This document shows positions 15,560 through 32,523 of a DNA stretch of 64,000 nucleotides, in pieces. Every line of letters begins with the position of its first letter. Position 1 is the stretch's first letter. The notes beneath the pieces are model-generated. The model saw only the letters and a list, made by a program, of their open reading frames with translations, was not told the origin of the DNA and did not search any database. This DNA comes from Trichosphaerium sp. ATCC 40318. Its lineage: Eukaryota; Protista; Tubulinea. The stretch spans positions 620,001 to 684,000 of the forward strand of contig JALMLS010000577.1 of assembly GCA_038496445.1 (NCBI GenBank). Direction: 5' to 3'. A program made the translations under genes and the position numbers.

Positions 15560-15790
15560 TTTATTAATAGTGACTGTACACTCAATGCCTTACACCTTCT
15601 GTTGGACTCCAAGCCGATAACGTATGCGCCTTCCAATACCACACCTTTGTATATGTTTGTTATTGATGTGCAACCATCTAGATTGATATTGTGTATGCCA
15701 GCAAATGGTCTAACACTTTTATCTGTTATTGATGTGGAACCACCAGTGTATGCTAGCTAATGCCTTAACACCTTTATTTGCTATACCATC
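15560..15790 (-). pseudogene. Degraded fragment of an LRR gene related to the F-box/LRR gene at 61258-62295
   Basis: Frameshifted pieces NKGVKALASIH and SITDKSVRPFAGIHNINLDGCTSIT resemble the ITDEGVKALAGVHTINL repeats. Confidence 0.6.
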
Positions 15791-16070
15791 ACAACGTTCC
15801 TAATTAGCAATAAAGCAGTAAACAAGCAAGCACATTGAAGAGAAAGCCAAAAAAAGGCTTGAAAAATAAAATCAATCACAAAAAACCACAATTCAATCAG
15901 CTTTTCTTCTTCTTTAAAGTAACTCTTACATATTCTACTCAAGTTCATACAGTTTTTAAACCAACACACTCACTTAAATATTAAAGTACAAATAAAAAAC
16001 AATAAATACAGTTGTAAATGTGTTAATACTCAACTGGGAGTAGGTAGTTTACAAATATTCAAAAAGGAAA

Positions 16071-16548
16071 ATGGGTGCACATCTTTCAGCAATTCCTCAC
16101 GCATTACTTAACACGTGCTGTACAACTTATACAGCCAAACGTAAACCCTCCAAAACGATTAAACGTGGCCTTAAACCAATGAGAAAACGTGTTCCTATGG
16201 CACGTTTTAGTTGCCAATCGCCCCGAGATAGTACGCAGTCTCCAAGCTTTACTCCTAGCTTTGGGGATAGTACAATACAAGCTGCTCCTCCCCGCCATAA
16301 CCTTGATCTCCAGAATGCCCAGCCAGTGGATTACAAAGGTCATATCGACGTAGTTGTAAACGTGATAACTTACTTTTATTTGTAGGAACGTATGTGACTC
16401 ACAAAGAGTACACGACATGAACCCTTTTTTTAACTGATTTCCCTGCCAGCAAGTAATCGACACCTTGAAATAAAAGGGTTTATTCGCACTCAACGACCAA
16501 GACATAAAGGCCTTAGACAAATTTAGACGCAAGAGAAAAAGGATTGAT
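16071..16548 (+). pseudogene. Third copy of the MGAHLS/HEPN gene family, lacking exon 3 and the HEPN exon (internal deletion)
   Basis: Exon 1, about 265 bp upstream and the last exon/3' flank are homologous to 29070-30545 (reverse complement). Exon 2 runs directly into the poly-T of the last intron at ~16424. Confidence 0.8.
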
Positions 16549-16990
16549 ACTCGAAATCCACGCACTTTGTATTTTATAGTCTAATAAACAAAAACTTGTT
16601 CTTTGGTGTACCCTTTCTCGCTCAAAGGAGATTGGTCTAACTGTTGTCAACGTAACATACGACGATCCACGTGAACGGGCTTGCTTTTTTGCAAGGTTAT
16701 ACGGAGGATTCTGGGCACCCTACATGTCTTTAAGAAGCTTATACTCACAGTACAAGAAACCTAAGCTTTTCTCGAGATATTGTGTATCCTGTCAAGCCTT
16801 CAAACCTTTGTCTGTAACTTATGCCACGAAGAAGCAACCTCAGTTTCCCAAGCACAGCTTCTTATAGCTGTGCCGTGAATAACATTCAAACTCGGCCTCT
16901 TTAGTATACTTATGTGATAATGTATTTACCATGAGGTTTAAACTTGTTTTACTGATTTTATTATTTGTTTAAACAACTAATCAAAAGAAT

Positions 16991-24682: not shown

Positions 24683-25424
24683 ATGTTGACCATTTCCTTT
24701 TCGTATTGCCTTCATATACGTACTAACGCCCAGTGTAGAACCCCATACTATTGTAGACGTGCTACCAGCCGACTTACAACGTAAAATAAGTTCGTACATT
24801 GGCGAAGTGCACAATAACTGGCATCTTCTATCGAAAAAAGCAGCTACATTAACACGCTTCAATGACACTTTAGAGAAGCACGGAGTTTTTATACAGTGGC
24901 ACACAACTGGCGTAGTAAGTCAAATAGCGCGCTACAAGCACGATAAGCTCCATGGAGAGGCCGTGACGTTTCACCAAAATGGAAGTATTCGCTCGAATTG
25001 TTTTTTCAAAGATGGAGCGATTGACGGAGAATACAAAGAGTGGAATGCCACTGGCGCGTTGCTAACTCTTCAGAGTTTCAGCAACGGCATTTTGGAAGGT
25101 GTAAGTAAAGATTGGTTTCCAAACGGCCAGCTTTTATCTCATTGCGAGTATAAAAATGGTTTGTGTGAAGGAAAGTCAATGAAATGGTATATCACTGGTA
25201 AAGAGAGTAATATGGTTCATTTTAAAGAAGGAAGGGAAGACGGTGAATGTAAGAGATGGGCAAGAAATGGACAATTAATGGTTCATTGGTTTAAAAAGAA
25301 TGGAAAAGATGAAGGAGAATATAAAGAGTTTTTCGAAGATGGAAAACTTGCTTGGCATTGTATCAAGAGAAACGGAAAGGTTGTTCGGACTCTTCTTTGC
25401 AGATATTTTAATGAGAATCAATGA
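24683..25424 (+). CDS. F-box-like N-terminus + MORN-variant (YwqK-like) repeat protein
   Basis: VDVLPADLQRKISSYI, then ~24-aa repeats of the type G..DGEYKEW..NG.L; one short 5' intron. Confidence 0.8.
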
Positions 25425-25773: not shown

Positions 25774-26746
25774 ATGCAAGTTTTCGTGAAGACACTTACA
25801 GGCAAGACAATTACAATAGATGTTTCGCCAAGCGACACGGTTGCAGTTGCGAAGCAAAAGATCCAAGACAAAGAAGGTGAGTCAGAAATTAGACTCATAA
25901 GCCAATTGACTATTTTTAGGCATTCCTGTAGATCAACAACGACTTATTTTTGCTGGTAAACAGTTGGAGGATGGCAGAACGTTCTCTGATTACTGTATTC
26001 AGGTTTGTTGTACTCTACTTCGTTTTCAAAACTAACGTTACTGTTTGTAGAAAGAGAGTACATTACATCTTGTCCTGAGACTACGAGGGAGCTTAGTACG
26101 CGTTCCAGCAAATCCAACGGCAACTAGAACGCCATGGAAGCCTATTCACCCAGAAATCGCCCAATTTAACTCAAAGTATCTCGATTCTGGTTTTCTGCGC
26201 ATAGAAAACGACGACAACCCTCTACACGCAATTAAACAAGAGTGTCCACAGACATTCTCGTTTCCTTTGCTCTCTTCCGAGTTCTGCAAAAAGATAGTTG
26301 GCGAGATTCAAAATTACATGAAAGTAACTGGAGATTCGGGTATCGCTCTTCGGGCAGCTCGTTTCGGATTTGATAAATCAGCCGAAAAAATGGTTCGAGA
26401 CCACATTGAACCTCTTGTGCCTATCCTTTTCCCTCACTTGAAAGGACAGAGCTTCAAGCTCTTACCTAAGGTTATGGCATACACTCCAGGTAGAAATGAG
26501 GACTGGCCTGTTCACACTGATGGAGATTTGGCTACGTTAAATATTTGTCTTTCGGAAACAAAGTCATTTTCGGGTGCAAATCTTAAAGTTTTCTCTGGCG
26601 AAGATGATAGTGTTGTGGAAGTCGCTCACCAATGTGGAAGAGCTATTATTCACCCTGGAGATATACCGCATTCTGTGACGCCATTAACACGTGGTTCTAG
26701 GTTTGGATTGATCATTAAATTGAATCATCCTGACCTTAACTTTTAA
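25774..26746 (+). CDS. Ubiquitin-like domain fused to 2OG-Fe(II) dioxygenase (OGFOD2/PLOD C-terminal-like)
   Basis: Spliced [14 protein letters not shown]...[16 protein letters not shown]...[14 protein letters not shown], followed in frame by HTD...H(IPH)...R(GSRF) oxygenase motifs and TLNICL. Confidence 0.88.
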
Positions 26747-27154: not shown

Positions 27155-28254
27155 TTAACGTCTTGTACGGCGTCTTTTTTCTCGTTTAGACGATGAGACT
27201 TTAGATGACGAAGATCTTTTACGCTTCTTTCTACCCTTTTTAAGCACTTTAATATCCTCGGCATTGAGGTAGAACACCCCTAGCTTTTCAAGCAGCTTTA
27301 TACTTACTACATAAAAACAGTCAGAAAAAAACACCATTTTTTATTTTGTTTAGTACCGTCATGTAAGTCGTCTTCCTCAACTTCTAAGAGCGTCTTAAAT
27401 GTAGTGCTCAAGGGTCTAAGGCATAGTTTTTCTATAAACTTTTTGCCTTTGATCAACGCATTTTTAATCAACGGGAAACTTATCTTGCCGTTGTGGAATG
27501 CAGCATTACGTAAGTTCTTTGTTGCCGTAATAGCTTCTCTAGTAGTTGTACCAGTTACTATCTGATGTTGTAGAGAGCCTTCAAATATTCTCGGTACTAT
27601 TTCCTTAAGATATATTATATCTGCAGTTTCAAGCGTATGCTTGTAGTAGAAGGCTGTAGCATCTGCCTCACTTAGCCGCTTAAAAAGAACACGGGCATCC
27701 TTCTTCCACATGTTGATGTAGTTCTTTAAACAAAACTCCACCTCAGATACTATTTCATGGGCAATATCTACCTTCCACTTCTCGTTCTCCACTAAGAAGT
27801 ACATTAGACTTAATTGTGAGAACGCTTGTGGTACGTACCGTGATAAAGATCAGTGGGTTTGTGCTAGAATTTTGGGTTTTAGTTTTGTTCTTTTTTTTTG
27901 ACACGAATTGAAAAAGTACCTGGTCTTTTGTTTCGTCGAACGCCCTGTATGACATTCTGTAGTCCTAAAACTATGTAAGTAATCACGTTTTACTTATATT
28001 GTAGTTACGTTGAAGTGGCCCTGATAGTTCACTTGCTGGCGCCGAGCATCTTCACGCTCAGTAACAAATACATTATCCCCAAAGCTAGGAGTACTATCTT
28101 GGCGCGATGGGCAACTAGAACGTGCCATAGGAACACGTTTTCTCATTGGTTTAAGGCCACGTTTAATCGTTTTGAAGGGTTTAAGTTTGGTTGTATAAGT
28201 TGTACAGCACGTGTTAAGGAATGTGTGAGGAATTGCTGAAAGATGTGCACCCAT
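27155..28254 (-). CDS. MGAHLS family copy A: putative myristoylated Swt1-like HEPN-domain protein with basic C-terminal NLS (5 exons)
   Basis: Intact frame across 4 GT-AG introns; SEVEFCLKNYI, LETADI, R-x4-H motif RNAAFH at 27493-27510; tail KKGRKKRKR...KRRRTRR. Confidence 0.75.
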
Positions 28255-29156
28255 TTTCCTTTTTGAATATTTGTAAACTACCTACTCCCAGTTGAGTATC
28301 AACACATTTACAACTGTTTTTATTGTTTTTTATTTGTACTTTAATATTTGAGTAAGTGTGTTTGATTAAAAACTTTATTAACTTGCGTACAATATGTAAG
28401 AGTTACTTTTAAGAAGAAGAACAGCTAATTGAATTGTATTTTTTTTTGTGATTGATTTTTTTTTTCAAGCCTTTTTTGGCTTTCTCTTCAATGTGCTTCC
28501 TTGTCTTCATTGTTGGTAATGTATATATGAAAGTGAGTTCAAACGCTTTTAGGTGAAATCATGTTTTTATTTGTTACGATTTTGTTTCAATCGATTGACA
28601 AAAAGCAAATTTTATCACGTGATTAAACGTTCAAATCAAGGTACATGACTGCGCTGATTCTTAAACTGGAGAAAGTAGCTTCCTAAATATTCATGATCAA
28701 AGACAGCTTTCAAGTCTTTCCTTTAATTCTATTTCTCGTATAATCTCACTTTAATACAGTAAAGGTGAAAAAACAAAGCCTTTAAGAGCATACAACAATT
28801 CTATTTAAAACATAAATTAAAGGTGATCTTATCACTCCCAGAAACCCACAGCAACTTCCTTCAGAACCGTCTTAAAAATCTCAAACACTGGTAGGCATTG
28901 TACGTACGTTCCAGAATGTTTGTGAGCAGGAACAAGATATAAACACGTGATATTCTTGCAATTGGAATTGCACACAATTCAACACCGGTTTTGTAAATCT
29001 TGTATATAAATTCGACAAGTACGGATACAAGATTTATTTTTGATTGATTGATCAAAGAAAGTTTAGGTCGGTGAGAAAGGATACACAAAGAACAACTTTT
29101 TGTTTATTAGAACTATACTATCTACTATAAAATACAAAGTGCGCGGATTTCTAGTA

Positions 29157-30281
29157 TCAATCCTTTCTTGTTTTCAAGCGTTTTTTTGGGCGACCTGATG
29201 ATTCTGTTCTTTTACGCTTTTTCTCCTGCTTGCGTCGAAATTTTTCTAAGACTTTTTTCTCTTGATCGTTGAGTGCGAATAAACCCTTCTTTTCAAGTTC
29301 TCGTTTACTCACTAGCAGGTAAATAAGTTAAAAAAAAAGTGTTATTTTGTTATGTACCTTCAAAAAAATCTTCTTCCTTAGCGTTAAGTAGCTTCGTAAA
29401 ACGCTTGCTAGGTTTTCTACGAACAAGATTCATAAGTGCTGCGCCTTGTATTAACGCATTTTTAATTAGCGCAAACGTTATAACGCCGTTGTGACAAACC
29501 GCATTACGCAAGTTTTTAGTGGCGCTAATACAATTGATAACACCTCCCTTGACTACTCCCTCCAAATTGGTCCCTTTAAATAATCCTTTAATGACTCCAG
29601 GCAAGTGGCTGATATCAGCTGTTTCAAGGGTGTGCTTCTTTCCTTTCTCGTTGAGCTTGTGTATCTCCTTTTGAAACTCAGCACGAGCTTCTTGAATCCA
29701 TTTATGGACATAGTTTTTGGCGGTGTACTCCACCTCGGAAATTATGCTCCTAGCTATCTCGACGAGCCACACTGGGTTTTCGACTAAGCTAAGTTAATAC
29801 ACAAACGAAAACAACTGTAGAGGTGACGTACCCTGCCAAAGGTCTTTTTTGTTTAGCTAGAATTGTGGTTTTAGTTTTGTTTTGGTGATGACAGGTAAAA
29901 AAAAAAAAAGTACCGTAGGGTTCCTTTCTGCGTACTCTGTGTGAGTCATTGTACGTTCCTACAGATAAAAGTAAGTTATCACGTTTACAATTTTTAACTT
30001 ACATCGATATGACCTTTGTAATCCACTGGCTGGGCATTCTGGAGATCAAGGTTACGGCGGCGAGGAGCATCTTGTATTGTACTATCCCCAAAGCTAGGAG
30101 TAGAGCTTGGAGTAAAGGTACTATCTCGGCGCGATGGGCAACTACCACGTGCCATAGAAACACGTTTTCTCATTTGTTTAAGGCCACGTTTAATCGTTTT
30201 GGAGGGTTTAGGTTTGGCTGTATAAGTTGTACAGCACGTGTTAAGTAATGTGTGAGGAATTGCTGAAAGATGTGCACCCAT
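29157..30281 (-). CDS. MGAHLS family copy B: putative myristoylated Swt1-like HEPN-domain protein with basic C-terminal NLS (5 exons)
   Basis: Same intron positions and phases as copy A; SEVEYTAKNYV, LETADI, RNAVCH at 29491-29508; tail RRKQEKKRKR...RPKKRLK. Confidence 0.75.
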
Positions 30282-31550
30282 TTTCCTTTTTGAATATTTG
30301 TAAACTACCTACTCCCAGTTGAGTATTAACGCATTTAAAACTGTTTTTATTGTTTTTTAATTGTACTTTAATATTTAAGTGAGTTTGCTGGTTTAAAAAC
30401 TTTATTAACTTGCGTAGAATACGTAAGAGTTACTTTAAAGTAGAAGAAAGCTAATTGAATTGTGGGTTTTTTTTTGTGATTGATTTTATTTTTCAAACCT
30501 TTTATGGCTTTTGATGTGCTTCCTTGTTTTCTGTTTTATTGTCGGTAATGCGTAGTGTATGAACATAAAATTGAATTCAAACAAAGGCTTTGGGTGAAAT
30601 CATGTTTTTATTTTGTTTTGGTTTCGATTGATAAAAAAGCAATATTTATCACGTGCAATTACGCTTTAGTTCAAAGCCAAGATACTTTATTTTTCTCTTT
30701 CGTTGTTACTTTCAAACTCATGAAGGAACACTAGCTCTTTATGGTTGTATTAGACGTTAAAGTCTACCTCCGTAATGAAATAAAACCAACTTTTTATTAT
30801 GTAACGCCATCTATTGAGGCCATTGAAAAGTGACACCGTCGTGGTACTTATCTTTATTGCAAATATTGGTATCATAGAAGCGAGCCTCAGTTAAATACAC
30901 TGACGTGTTAAAAATACTGCAAGTTGTTTTGTAAACGCTAGTAGCCTACTCTTACGTTGTCGTTTTGGCGTATAGGCATGGTATTGCTGAGAAGCCAAAG
31001 AAACATCGAATCACACTCAACTCTCGCGAATCAAGACTATGTTACGAGACACAAACACCTCTATTGTCAATAGCACGTATGCATTTATCACGTATTCGTC
31101 TTTTATGGTGTCAACTAGCGTTTCAGCCATAGATAAGCGGACTGTAAAAACAACACTATCTTGTACTGGTATGATCTCAGTACTGAGTATCGAGGTGGCC
31201 GCAAGTATCGGACTTTTTTTAAAAAACAACATGTTTGGATGAAAACATCACGTGGTTTTTTATGTTTTGTCACGTTTTACGAAGGGTTTTATTTTTAGTG
31301 GACACAAGCACGATGAAAAACATAAAACCGCGGGTAAGTTTTCCCGATAACTGTGTACTAGCGCTAGAGTTTCATACGTCACTTTTCTGAACAGTTTTCG
31401 CATGTTCTTCAACTACAAAACAAGTTATATAACATAGACAAGTTGTGCTAAAAGCGCTAGAAGATGTTTTTCTGAGTTTTTCACTAGCGCTAGTTCACAC
31501 ACAAAAACTTGACCGTGTTTTAACATCAAAAAACATTAACCCAACACATA

Positions 31551-32523
31551 ATGCATCACTTCTCACTTCTACTATCCCTACTTGCTCTTGCTGTCCTTTG
31601 TTCCGTACGTATTCTTTACCTTTTACTGCAAAAAAAGACACTAAAGAAGTAACTATGTTAACTTGCGTTCTCAGGGACAATCTACCGATGCATGCGTCAG
31701 GAGCTGTATGGAAGACTTTTCTGATTGTACTGCTAGTCGAGTAAGATGTAGAACAATCCTCAGCAATTGTATCGCAGCTTGCAATGAAGAACCAACCGAC
31801 ATGCCAACTGATATGCCAACCGAAAATCCATTTGCAGTTTGCCTTGGGGAGTGCCGCGAGACTTTTAGAATGTGTTTAAGCTCTGCAACCACCGCTGCCG
31901 CCAGAAGACAATGTACATTAGAATACAGAGAGTGCCAAACTGACTGTCGTCCACAATCAACACCTCGACCAACTGAAGAACCATCTTGCCGAAGAATGTG
32001 TATGCAAGAGTTCAGGGAGTGTAACGAAAACGGAGATGCCCAAGAATGTCGCGAAGCTCTAAGAATGTGCCTGACCGATATGTGCGATATTGATCTTCCA
32101 ACACCTCGCCCTACAAATGCCCCAACCTGCCGACAAATGTGCGTTGCTTCTTTCAGAGAATGCAGAGAGAACGGAGGAAATGTTCAAGAGTGTCGTGCTG
32201 CTTTGAGAGAATGTCTTTCCGAAGAGTGTGATCAAGGAGATGCATCACTTGTCGAAGACAGACCATCACGTAATCCTTGTGTCAACGAATGTAGTGAGGA
32301 CTTTAGAGATTGTATCGAGTTAGATGATGTCCCAGCTTCTGAATGTAGAGAAGAAAGAAGGATGTGCAGCGCCAGTTGCTTTGATAGACCTACTGGAACA
32401 CCTCGTCCAACTGAAGAGCCATCTTGCAGGAGACTATGCTTTCAAGAGTTCAGGGAGTGTCAAGCTGCTGGTAATCAACGTTCATGCGGTCAAGTTTTGA
32501 GAGCTTGTATTGAAGAATGTTAA
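31551..32523 (+). CDS. Secreted Cys-rich repeat protein (6 x CX3CX6C...CX6CX3-4C modules with Pro/Thr linkers)
   Basis: Signal exon MHHFSLLLSLLALAVLCS, one intron, then six 6-Cys modules separated by linkers such as PTDMPT and PRPTEEP. Confidence 0.85.

Follow-up and report, generated by a model that had tools for sequence, protein, structure and literature searches.

A small tandem gene family with a candidate divergent HEPN domain in the protist Trichosphaerium sp. ATCC 40318

What do two neighbouring genes of Trichosphaerium sp. ATCC 40318, here called A and B, encode, and are their products ribonucleases? The genes lie side by side on the minus strand of contig JALMLS010000577.1, one of 642 contigs of a 70-Mb genome, within a stretch of 64,000 nucleotides (nt) that we refer to as the window and whose numbering is used below. 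A reading made from the letters of this stretch without database searches (the sequence-only reading) had described the pair as putatively myristoylated, nucleus-directed ribonucleases (RNases) of the HEPN type. The explanation that we favour, and hold to be somewhat probable when taken as a whole, is that A and B belong to a tiny family in which a divergent HEPN domain of the Swt1/Abi2 clade is joined to a basic N-terminus and to a C-terminal helix with a basic tail, and which has evolved by birth and death. The narrower statement that the central domain has the HEPN fold is, in our judgement, likely.

Spliced models of both genes were built by hand and then verified by script, and they bear out the claim of a tandem pair of intact five-exon paralogues. 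Both reading frames are open on the minus strand, all eight introns have GT-AG borders and lengths of 44–57 nt (44, 56, 47 and 50 nt in A; 44, 57, 48 and 46 nt in B), and intron positions and phases are the same in the two genes. The length differences between corresponding introns are not multiples of three, and the spliced frames are open nonetheless. Judged from these features, A and B are real, intact and anciently diverged tandem paralogues with a predicted five-exon structure.

The encoded proteins would consist of four parts: (i) a basic, acid-free N-terminal region of ∼50–60 residues beginning with Met-Gly, (ii) a short linker from two micro-exons, (iii) a helical domain, most likely a HEPN domain that has diverged far, whose ∼140 residues come from a single exon, and (iv) a tail rich in lysine and arginine, preceded by a short conserved helix. 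The domain would be placed in the Swt1/Abi2 clade with its R-N-x3-H and E-x3-K motifs intact. Each motif listed in the sequence-only reading is present in both A and B (Table 1). The helix between domain and tail, with the pattern L-E-x-x-G-x-F, is conserved in A, B and a third copy, D, that is described below; neither this helix nor the tails have a Pfam family in A and B, and a comparison of exon 1 with Pfam returned nothing beyond IL8 noise.

Evidence for a HEPN-like domain

HEPN domains are defined by an R-x4-6-H motif with a polar residue (N, D or H) right after the arginine, and by a conserved acidic residue farther upstream, typically in a second motif, Ex3[KR] (PMC3710099). The three HEPN-bearing copies all retain R-N-x3-H and E-x3-[KR], as RNAAFH and EFCLK in A, RNAVCH and EYTAK in B, and RNARCH and EHALR in D. 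In each copy an asparagine directly follows the arginine, and R-x4-H belongs to the block of the domain that is best conserved. Conservation of the arginine and histidine in another family member had been set as a test of the HEPN reading, and copy D, with its RNARCH, keeps the two residues.

At the level of sequence families, the Pfam model HEPN_Swt1 (PF18731) matches B over profile positions 19–114 of 115 (E 3e-4, 21.5 bits). For a more sensitive comparison, 31 genuine HEPN_Swt1 domains (47–146 bits) were collected from cyanobacterial genomes and aligned by hhalign with a profile of A, B and D. The alignment covers 88 columns with a score of 21.5 (P 0.005), and the E-x3-K, LETADI/EDV and R-N-x3-H blocks align on their counterparts in the same order, RNAVCH falling on RNDWAH. 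None of 300 column shuffles reached this score (mean 12.1, standard deviation 2.6, maximum 20.8), and the reversed A/B/D profile scored 15.4. Language-model neighbours, taken from ESM Atlas features, point the same way: the best neighbour of B is an HEPN_Swt1 cluster (0.89), every named family among the neighbours of B is HEPN, and the named families in the top 100 of A are all HEPN (HEPN_Swt1 0.85; HEPN_DZIP3/DUF4559 0.80).

AlphaFold models of the two domains were built from a four-row alignment. The A model (AlphaFold2) is all-helical with a predicted local distance difference test (pLDDT) of 75.3, the B model has a pLDDT of 77.6, and in both of them the values around R-x4-H are 86–93. In the A model R-x4-H sits at the C-terminal end of helix 81–98; in the B model R92-H97 closes helix 72–96 and is followed by a loop (97–102) and helix 103–119. 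This placement fits HEPN, in which R-x4-H is located where a helix gives way to the following loop (Anantharaman et al. 2013, PMC3710099). HEPN structures are further marked by a four-helix up-down core. When the B model was compared with the ESM Atlas, its top shape match was the same HEPN_Swt1 cluster (template modelling score (TM) 0.57/0.53, 106 residues), and a MAE_28990 HEPN cluster was matched with a TM of 0.50. The homodimer prediction for the B domain, with a median score of 0.24, below the mark of 0.32, speaks neither for nor against a dimer.

Several points weigh against this assignment. The Pfam score of B is lower than the gathering cut-off of 27.5 bits, the same model leaves A blank, as it does the pieces of copy D, and the hhalign probability versus the cyanobacterial domains is only 7%. 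NCBIfam gives B a clearly spurious match to AhaH whose strength equals that of the Pfam match (E 6.6e-4). The middle third of both structural models is of low confidence, and the A model found no HEPN in the ESM Atlas (best TM 0.45). Searches of PDB structures with Foldseek and VIA-align returned helical-bundle noise only (Z < 8), within which fall the C-terminal domain of yeast Swt1 (4pqz versus the A model: Z 5.7, 108 of 136 residues, root-mean-square deviation 3.6) and Cas13 (Z 6.1–6.3). Motif conservation was judged on three paralogues alone, with no homologues, and the five-exon models and the Met-Gly 5' end of both genes are predictions read from DNA alone. Finally, activity, dimerisation, lipidation and localisation are proposed from motifs and from analogy with HEPN proteins.

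The same points can be taken to mean that the family is not HEPN but an orphan, lineage-specific helical family, in which R-x4-H and E-x3-K are coincidental or have a different function, for instance to bind a partner or, with no cleavage, a nucleic acid. All family-level scores are sub-threshold, the AhaH match is equally strong, structure searches yield generic helical bundles, the A model has no HEPN match in the ESM Atlas, and R-x4-H is a short motif. However, four partly independent lines agree on HEPN, namely Pfam, the profile–profile comparison with its shuffles, the language model (for both A and B) and the Atlas shape match of B; moreover, R-x4-H occupies the position in the models that is expected of HEPN, is part of the best-conserved block, and has the usual polar residue next to its arginine. 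We consider a non-HEPN family unlikely, if still a serious alternative. The Swt1-like HEPN domain of the sequence-only reading holds up as a weak, reproducible and in-register similarity, whereas it falls short at the Pfam cut-off and in the hhalign probability.

Two other assignments were rejected. The NCBIfam matches of B to AhaH and lpg1689 are spurious and fall on its charged helix. A death domain of the HeLo/MLKL type was also discarded, with MLKL scoring within noise (Z 6.3–6.7) and absent from the named language-model neighbours.

In the language-model comparison, three unnamed Ascomycota clusters come closest of all to the domain of A, with lengths of 133–224 amino acids (aa), similarities of 0.91–0.93 and 175–192 shared features. 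No sequence search reached these three clusters, which may represent an unannotated fungal HEPN-like family.

Relatives, targeting signals and possible roles

A profile search of 1.84 billion protein representatives returned nothing at E ≤ 0.001, and word-indexed searches with A and with B returned nothing at E ≤ 10. PDB sequences gave noise only, PADLOC models gave no match, viral and metagenome contigs were blank, and the search of BFVD viral-protein structures found nothing. As far as searched, the family is a sequence-level orphan limited to this protist. No sign was seen of an origin by recent horizontal transfer or as a viral insert: the genes carry introns, and the G+C content of the window is even.

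Solo, catalytically intact HEPN proteins of the Swt1 family (Ava_2192-type) occur in dictyostelids, Naegleria and Daphnia, where they are predicted to be defensive RNases, so a solo HEPN RNase candidate in an amoeba is of a known kind (PMC3710099). The statement in the sequence-only reading that no family with this layout had been described is therefore right only in part: solo Swt1-family HEPN proteins have been known since 2013, while what is new in A and B, on the sequence comparisons made here, is the extreme divergence, which leaves them below the Pfam threshold and undetectable by sequence search, together with the N- and C-terminal appendages. A and B share with the dictyostelid, Naegleria and Daphnia proteins a stand-alone domain, occurrence in an amoeboid protist, R-x4-H with its polar residue and lineage-specific multiplication, and the A/B/D profile aligns in register with bacterial members of the Swt1/Ava_2192 clade. 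In contrast to the known solo proteins, A and B have no HMMER-detectable relationship to any of the 1.84 billion proteins, form a family of just two or three functional copies, and carry a Met-Gly/Cys-Cys/polybasic N-terminus and a basic tail; the word 'myristoyl' occurs 0 times in PMC3710099, and a full-text literature search for HEPN with myristoylation found no relevant paper.

Three further groups were compared with A and B. Yeast and animal Swt1 (4pqz) is the namesake of the sole Pfam family matched, but there the HEPN domain is joined to a PIN nuclease and R-x4-H is for the most part gone (PMC3710099), a motif that A and B keep. The bacterial Abi2/AbiD/AbiF proteins and the HEPN toxins of toxin-antitoxin and abortive-infection systems, which belong to the same clade as Swt1-like HEPN (PMC3710099), are small HEPN RNases, as the products of A and B would be, and serve in conflict with viruses; unlike them, A and B are spliced eukaryotic genes that no PADLOC model matches. 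The KEN-domain RNases (RNase L, Ire1) are eukaryotic members of the HEPN superfamily and act as dimeric endoRNases in antiviral and stress responses, whereas A and B have no kinase or ankyrin regulatory module and, in the searches made, no sequence or structure match to them. By analogy with HEPN biology, the proteins would be metal-independent endoribonucleases, with an active site formed by R, N and H and the upstream Glu, probably in a dimer with two R-x4-H motifs (PMC3710099).

Where such an enzyme would act depends on how its two ends are read. According to the PROSITE-type rule, N-myristoylation involves Gly2, a small uncharged residue at position 3, Ser, Thr, Ala, Gly, Cys or Asn at position 6 and no Pro at position 7. 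The sequence MGAHLSA matches this rule in A, B, D and a relic copy, C, and together with the Cys pair it is conserved more strictly than the rest of the protein, being retained in all four copies. Met-Gly is the likely start because the ATG is preceded by an in-frame TAG at a distance of ∼43 nt; no upstream open reading frame (ORF) is conserved, and splicing into the final ∼35 nt of the leader may alter the start. At the level of motifs, Gly2 myristoylation is predicted from the consensus, and the tails of A and B, which match the classical monopartite pattern K-[KR]-x-[KR], are putative nuclear localisation signals.

On these motifs, the N-terminus would hold the protein on a membrane through myristoyl-Gly2, possibly palmitoyl-Cys16/17, and the polybasic patch, and the basic tail could serve as a nuclear signal or in RNA or lipid binding. 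Dual-acylated polybasic membrane anchors are known from proteins of the MARCKS or Src type. A and B resemble these in the Met-Gly-x3-Ser start, a Cys close by and a basic cluster, but their Cys pair, at positions 16–17, lies farther from Gly2 than in classical SH4 motifs. Neither the proteolytic release nor the nuclear or nucleolar import that the sequence-only reading envisaged found any support.

The N-terminus could alternatively send the protein to an organelle. An organelle presequence fits it equally well, because the first ∼50 residues of A contain no Asp or Glu and have an isoelectric point of 11, with a like character in B, C and D. The genes would then encode a HEPN RNase that is imported into the mitochondrion or has a housekeeping function, with a cleavable presequence in place of a lipid anchor and a role in organellar or ribosomal RNA processing in place of defence; Las1 and Swt1 are examples of eukaryotic housekeeping HEPN proteins (PMC3710099). 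However, it is MGAHLSA and the Cys pair that are most strictly kept in the four copies, and housekeeping genes are rarely orphan, tandem and found amid dead copies. We regard such an organellar or housekeeping enzyme as improbable.

For the favoured solo HEPN protein, analogy makes a part in biological conflict plausible, because the family is orphan, tandem and subject to birth and death, and because expansions of solo HEPN proteins predicted to be defensive provide a precedent (PMC3710099). The antiviral, cell-death or selfish-toxin action suggested by the sequence-only reading gained no direct evidence, defence being plausible by this analogy. Giant viruses and intracellular bacteria live in amoebae, which makes such genes candidates for innate immunity in protists. 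To our knowledge, the functions of the solo HEPN proteins of protists have never been tested. If the domain is an active HEPN RNase, the family would add a membrane- or organelle-targeted form to these proteins; at present it is an orphan whose fold is assigned as probable.

Gene copies and the mosaic 5' module

In the 70-Mb genome, only A, B and D were recovered as HEPN-bearing copies, whether the query was the protein, the profile (E ≤ 10) or a back-translated motif, and the back-translated LRNAxxHN pattern has exactly three matches, all within the family. A wider HEPN family in the genome was rejected on this basis, and a genome-wide scan with PF18731 gave one weak match only, on contig C7, which looks unrelated. 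When the 5' region of A was used as a DNA query, five copies were found (A, B, C, D and E). Thus, the genome-wide copy search proposed in the sequence-only reading turned up an extra HEPN copy, D, plus the relics C and E.

Copy C retains the 5' module and an intact exon 1, but its exon 2 is frameshifted, exons 3 and 4 with the HEPN domain are deleted, and its last exon is a decayed, frameshifted remnant. It matches the 5' module of A at 92% of DNA positions and is 92% identical to B beyond position +160 from the ATG; by these identities, copy C is a dead, recent derivative of B. In copy D, on a short contig, the frame is interrupted within exon 3, the domain exon and the last exon; these breaks may be assembly errors and not real lesions, since all of them sit at poly-A runs. 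Intron 4 of copy D has a GC donor. Fragment E follows copy D on the same contig, and its start reads MGAHL-stop. With two intact copies, one with frame breaks and two relics, the family displays a birth-and-death pattern.

Directly upstream of the 5' module of copy C (15640–15780, plus strand), two or three imperfect direct repeats of ∼60–70 nt were seen by eye, with the sequence pattern ttattgatgtg...ccagc...taacac.

Proportions of synonymous (pS) and non-synonymous (pN) differences between A and B were calculated by the Nei-Gojobori method. In the domain exon (exon 4) pS is 0.745, which is saturated, and pN is 0.348, with a protein identity of 44–46%; from the remainder of exon 1 to exon 3 the values are 0.635 and 0.354, and in exon 5 they are 0.681 and 0.444. 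Saturated synonymous sites alongside this pN argue for purifying selection on the domain exon, and selection on A and B is also suggested by the fact that copies so old would otherwise lose their splice sites and frames. That the family is decaying or silent, with residual open frames, is very improbable, since the three broken or fragmentary copies of five stand against saturated synonymous sites at a protein identity of ∼45% and against the retention of all splice sites and frames in A and B.

A different picture is seen at the 5' end, where the identity between copies forms a mosaic with sharp borders. Relative to the ATG, positions −200 to +65 are 89–98% identical among A, B, C and D (89–96% over −200 to −1, and 89–98% over codons 1–21). 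From +66 to +160, A, B and C are 93–94% identical to one another and ∼50% identical to D. Beyond +160, A is 63–65% identical to B or C, and only the B–C pair is high, at 92%. Within codons 1–58 of A and B, none of 41 synonymous sites is changed, versus 65 of 88 in exon 4 (Fisher p 2e-17). All 11 differences in these codons are non-synonymous, with a chance expectation of 0.05, a result that is suggestive only.

The 5' module thus delimited, ∼265–400 nt with the presumed promoter, the 5' untranslated region (UTR) and the first 21–53 codons, most likely owes its near-identity to nested gene-conversion tracts, as far as the pattern of identity allows this to be read. Constraint on the shared promoter, leader and N-terminus may add to it, since even copy D is ∼95% identical there. 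The contrast between this near-identical module and the saturated divergence elsewhere is a clean natural example of segmental concerted evolution, and the mosaic family could be used for mapping conversion tracts or regulatory constraint.

It can be speculated that the module is a homogenised cassette. Here, gene conversion would preserve an inducible promoter and a membrane-targeting N-terminus as a constant unit, with divergence confined to the nuclease domains, and the products would be lipid-anchored HEPN endoribonucleases directed against intracellular parasites such as giant viruses. We give this bolder proposal little credence as it stands; if true, the cassette would give eukaryotes an equivalent of the logic of bacterial polymorphic toxins, in which a constant head is combined with a variable toxin.

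That the 5' module could be a second gene, or a gene for an RNA, was also considered, and both readings were rejected: it has no match in Rfam, its RNA folding z-score (+0.52) is not unusual, and it holds no conserved ORF, as the sole upstream ORF in the module of A (33 aa) is not kept in B. A, B, C and D do share a two-codon upstream ORF, which precedes the main ATG by ∼58 nt (28309–28317 in A) and reads ATG-TGT-TGA in A and ATG-TGT-TAA or ATG-CGT-TAA in B, C and D. The shared module also includes a possible 5'-UTR intron, GTAACT...CAG, at about −160 to −66.

Feature coordinates and neighbouring genes

Table 1. Predicted features of genes A and B and of the further copies; positions are those of the window except for copy D and fragment E, which are numbered on contig C278.
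Feature	Positions	Strand	Remarks
Gene A	27155–28254	minus	5 exons, 300 aa; spliced model, open frame
Gene A, exons	28254–28009, 27964–27920, 27863–27839, 27791–27357, 27306–27155	minus	
Gene B	29157–30281	minus	5 exons, 309 aa; spliced model
Gene B, exons	30281–30003, 29958–29914, 29856–29832, 29783–29358, 29311–29157	minus	
Shared 5' module	A 28255–28584; B equivalent ∼30282–30610	minus	promoter and 5' UTR
MGAHLSA start	A 28234–28254; B 30261–30281	minus	N-myristoylation consensus
CC pair	A 28204–28209; B 30231–30236	minus	
Polybasic stretch	A 28135–28188; B 30162–30215	minus	
Exon 4 of A	27357–27791 (in-frame 27358–27789)	minus	HEPN-like domain, 144 aa
Exon 4 of B	29358–29783 (in-frame 29359–29781)	minus	HEPN-like domain, 141 aa
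E-x3-K	A 27724–27738; B 29716–29730	minus	EFCLK in A, EYTAK in B
LETADI	A 27616–27633; B 29611–29628	minus	
R-x4-H of A	27493–27510	minus	RNAAFH
R-x4-H of B	29491–29508	minus	RNAVCH
Exon 5	A 27155–27306; B equivalent 29157–29311	minus	conserved LEKLGxF helix and basic tail
Basic tail of A	27215–27241	minus	KKGRKKRKR
Basic tails of B	29208–29237, 29163–29192	minus	RRKQEKKRKR and RPKKRLKTRK
Copy C	15803–16570	plus	relic; 5' module and intact exon 1 (16071–16352)
Copy D	contig C278, 103–1540		short contig; keeps RNARCH and EHALR
Fragment E	contig C278, 1624–1753		after copy D; start reads MGAHL-stop

No antitoxin-like or MNT gene is apparent among the ORFs listed around A and B, whose products were not compared with protein families. 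The translations of the neighbouring ORFs suggest no partner for the HEPN genes. As read from these translations, 24759–25424 (plus strand) encodes a MORN-repeat-like protein, 26267–26746 (plus strand) a 2OG-Fe(II)-oxygenase-like protein, and 31663–32523 (plus strand) a cysteine-rich protein with repeated PRPT...EC units.

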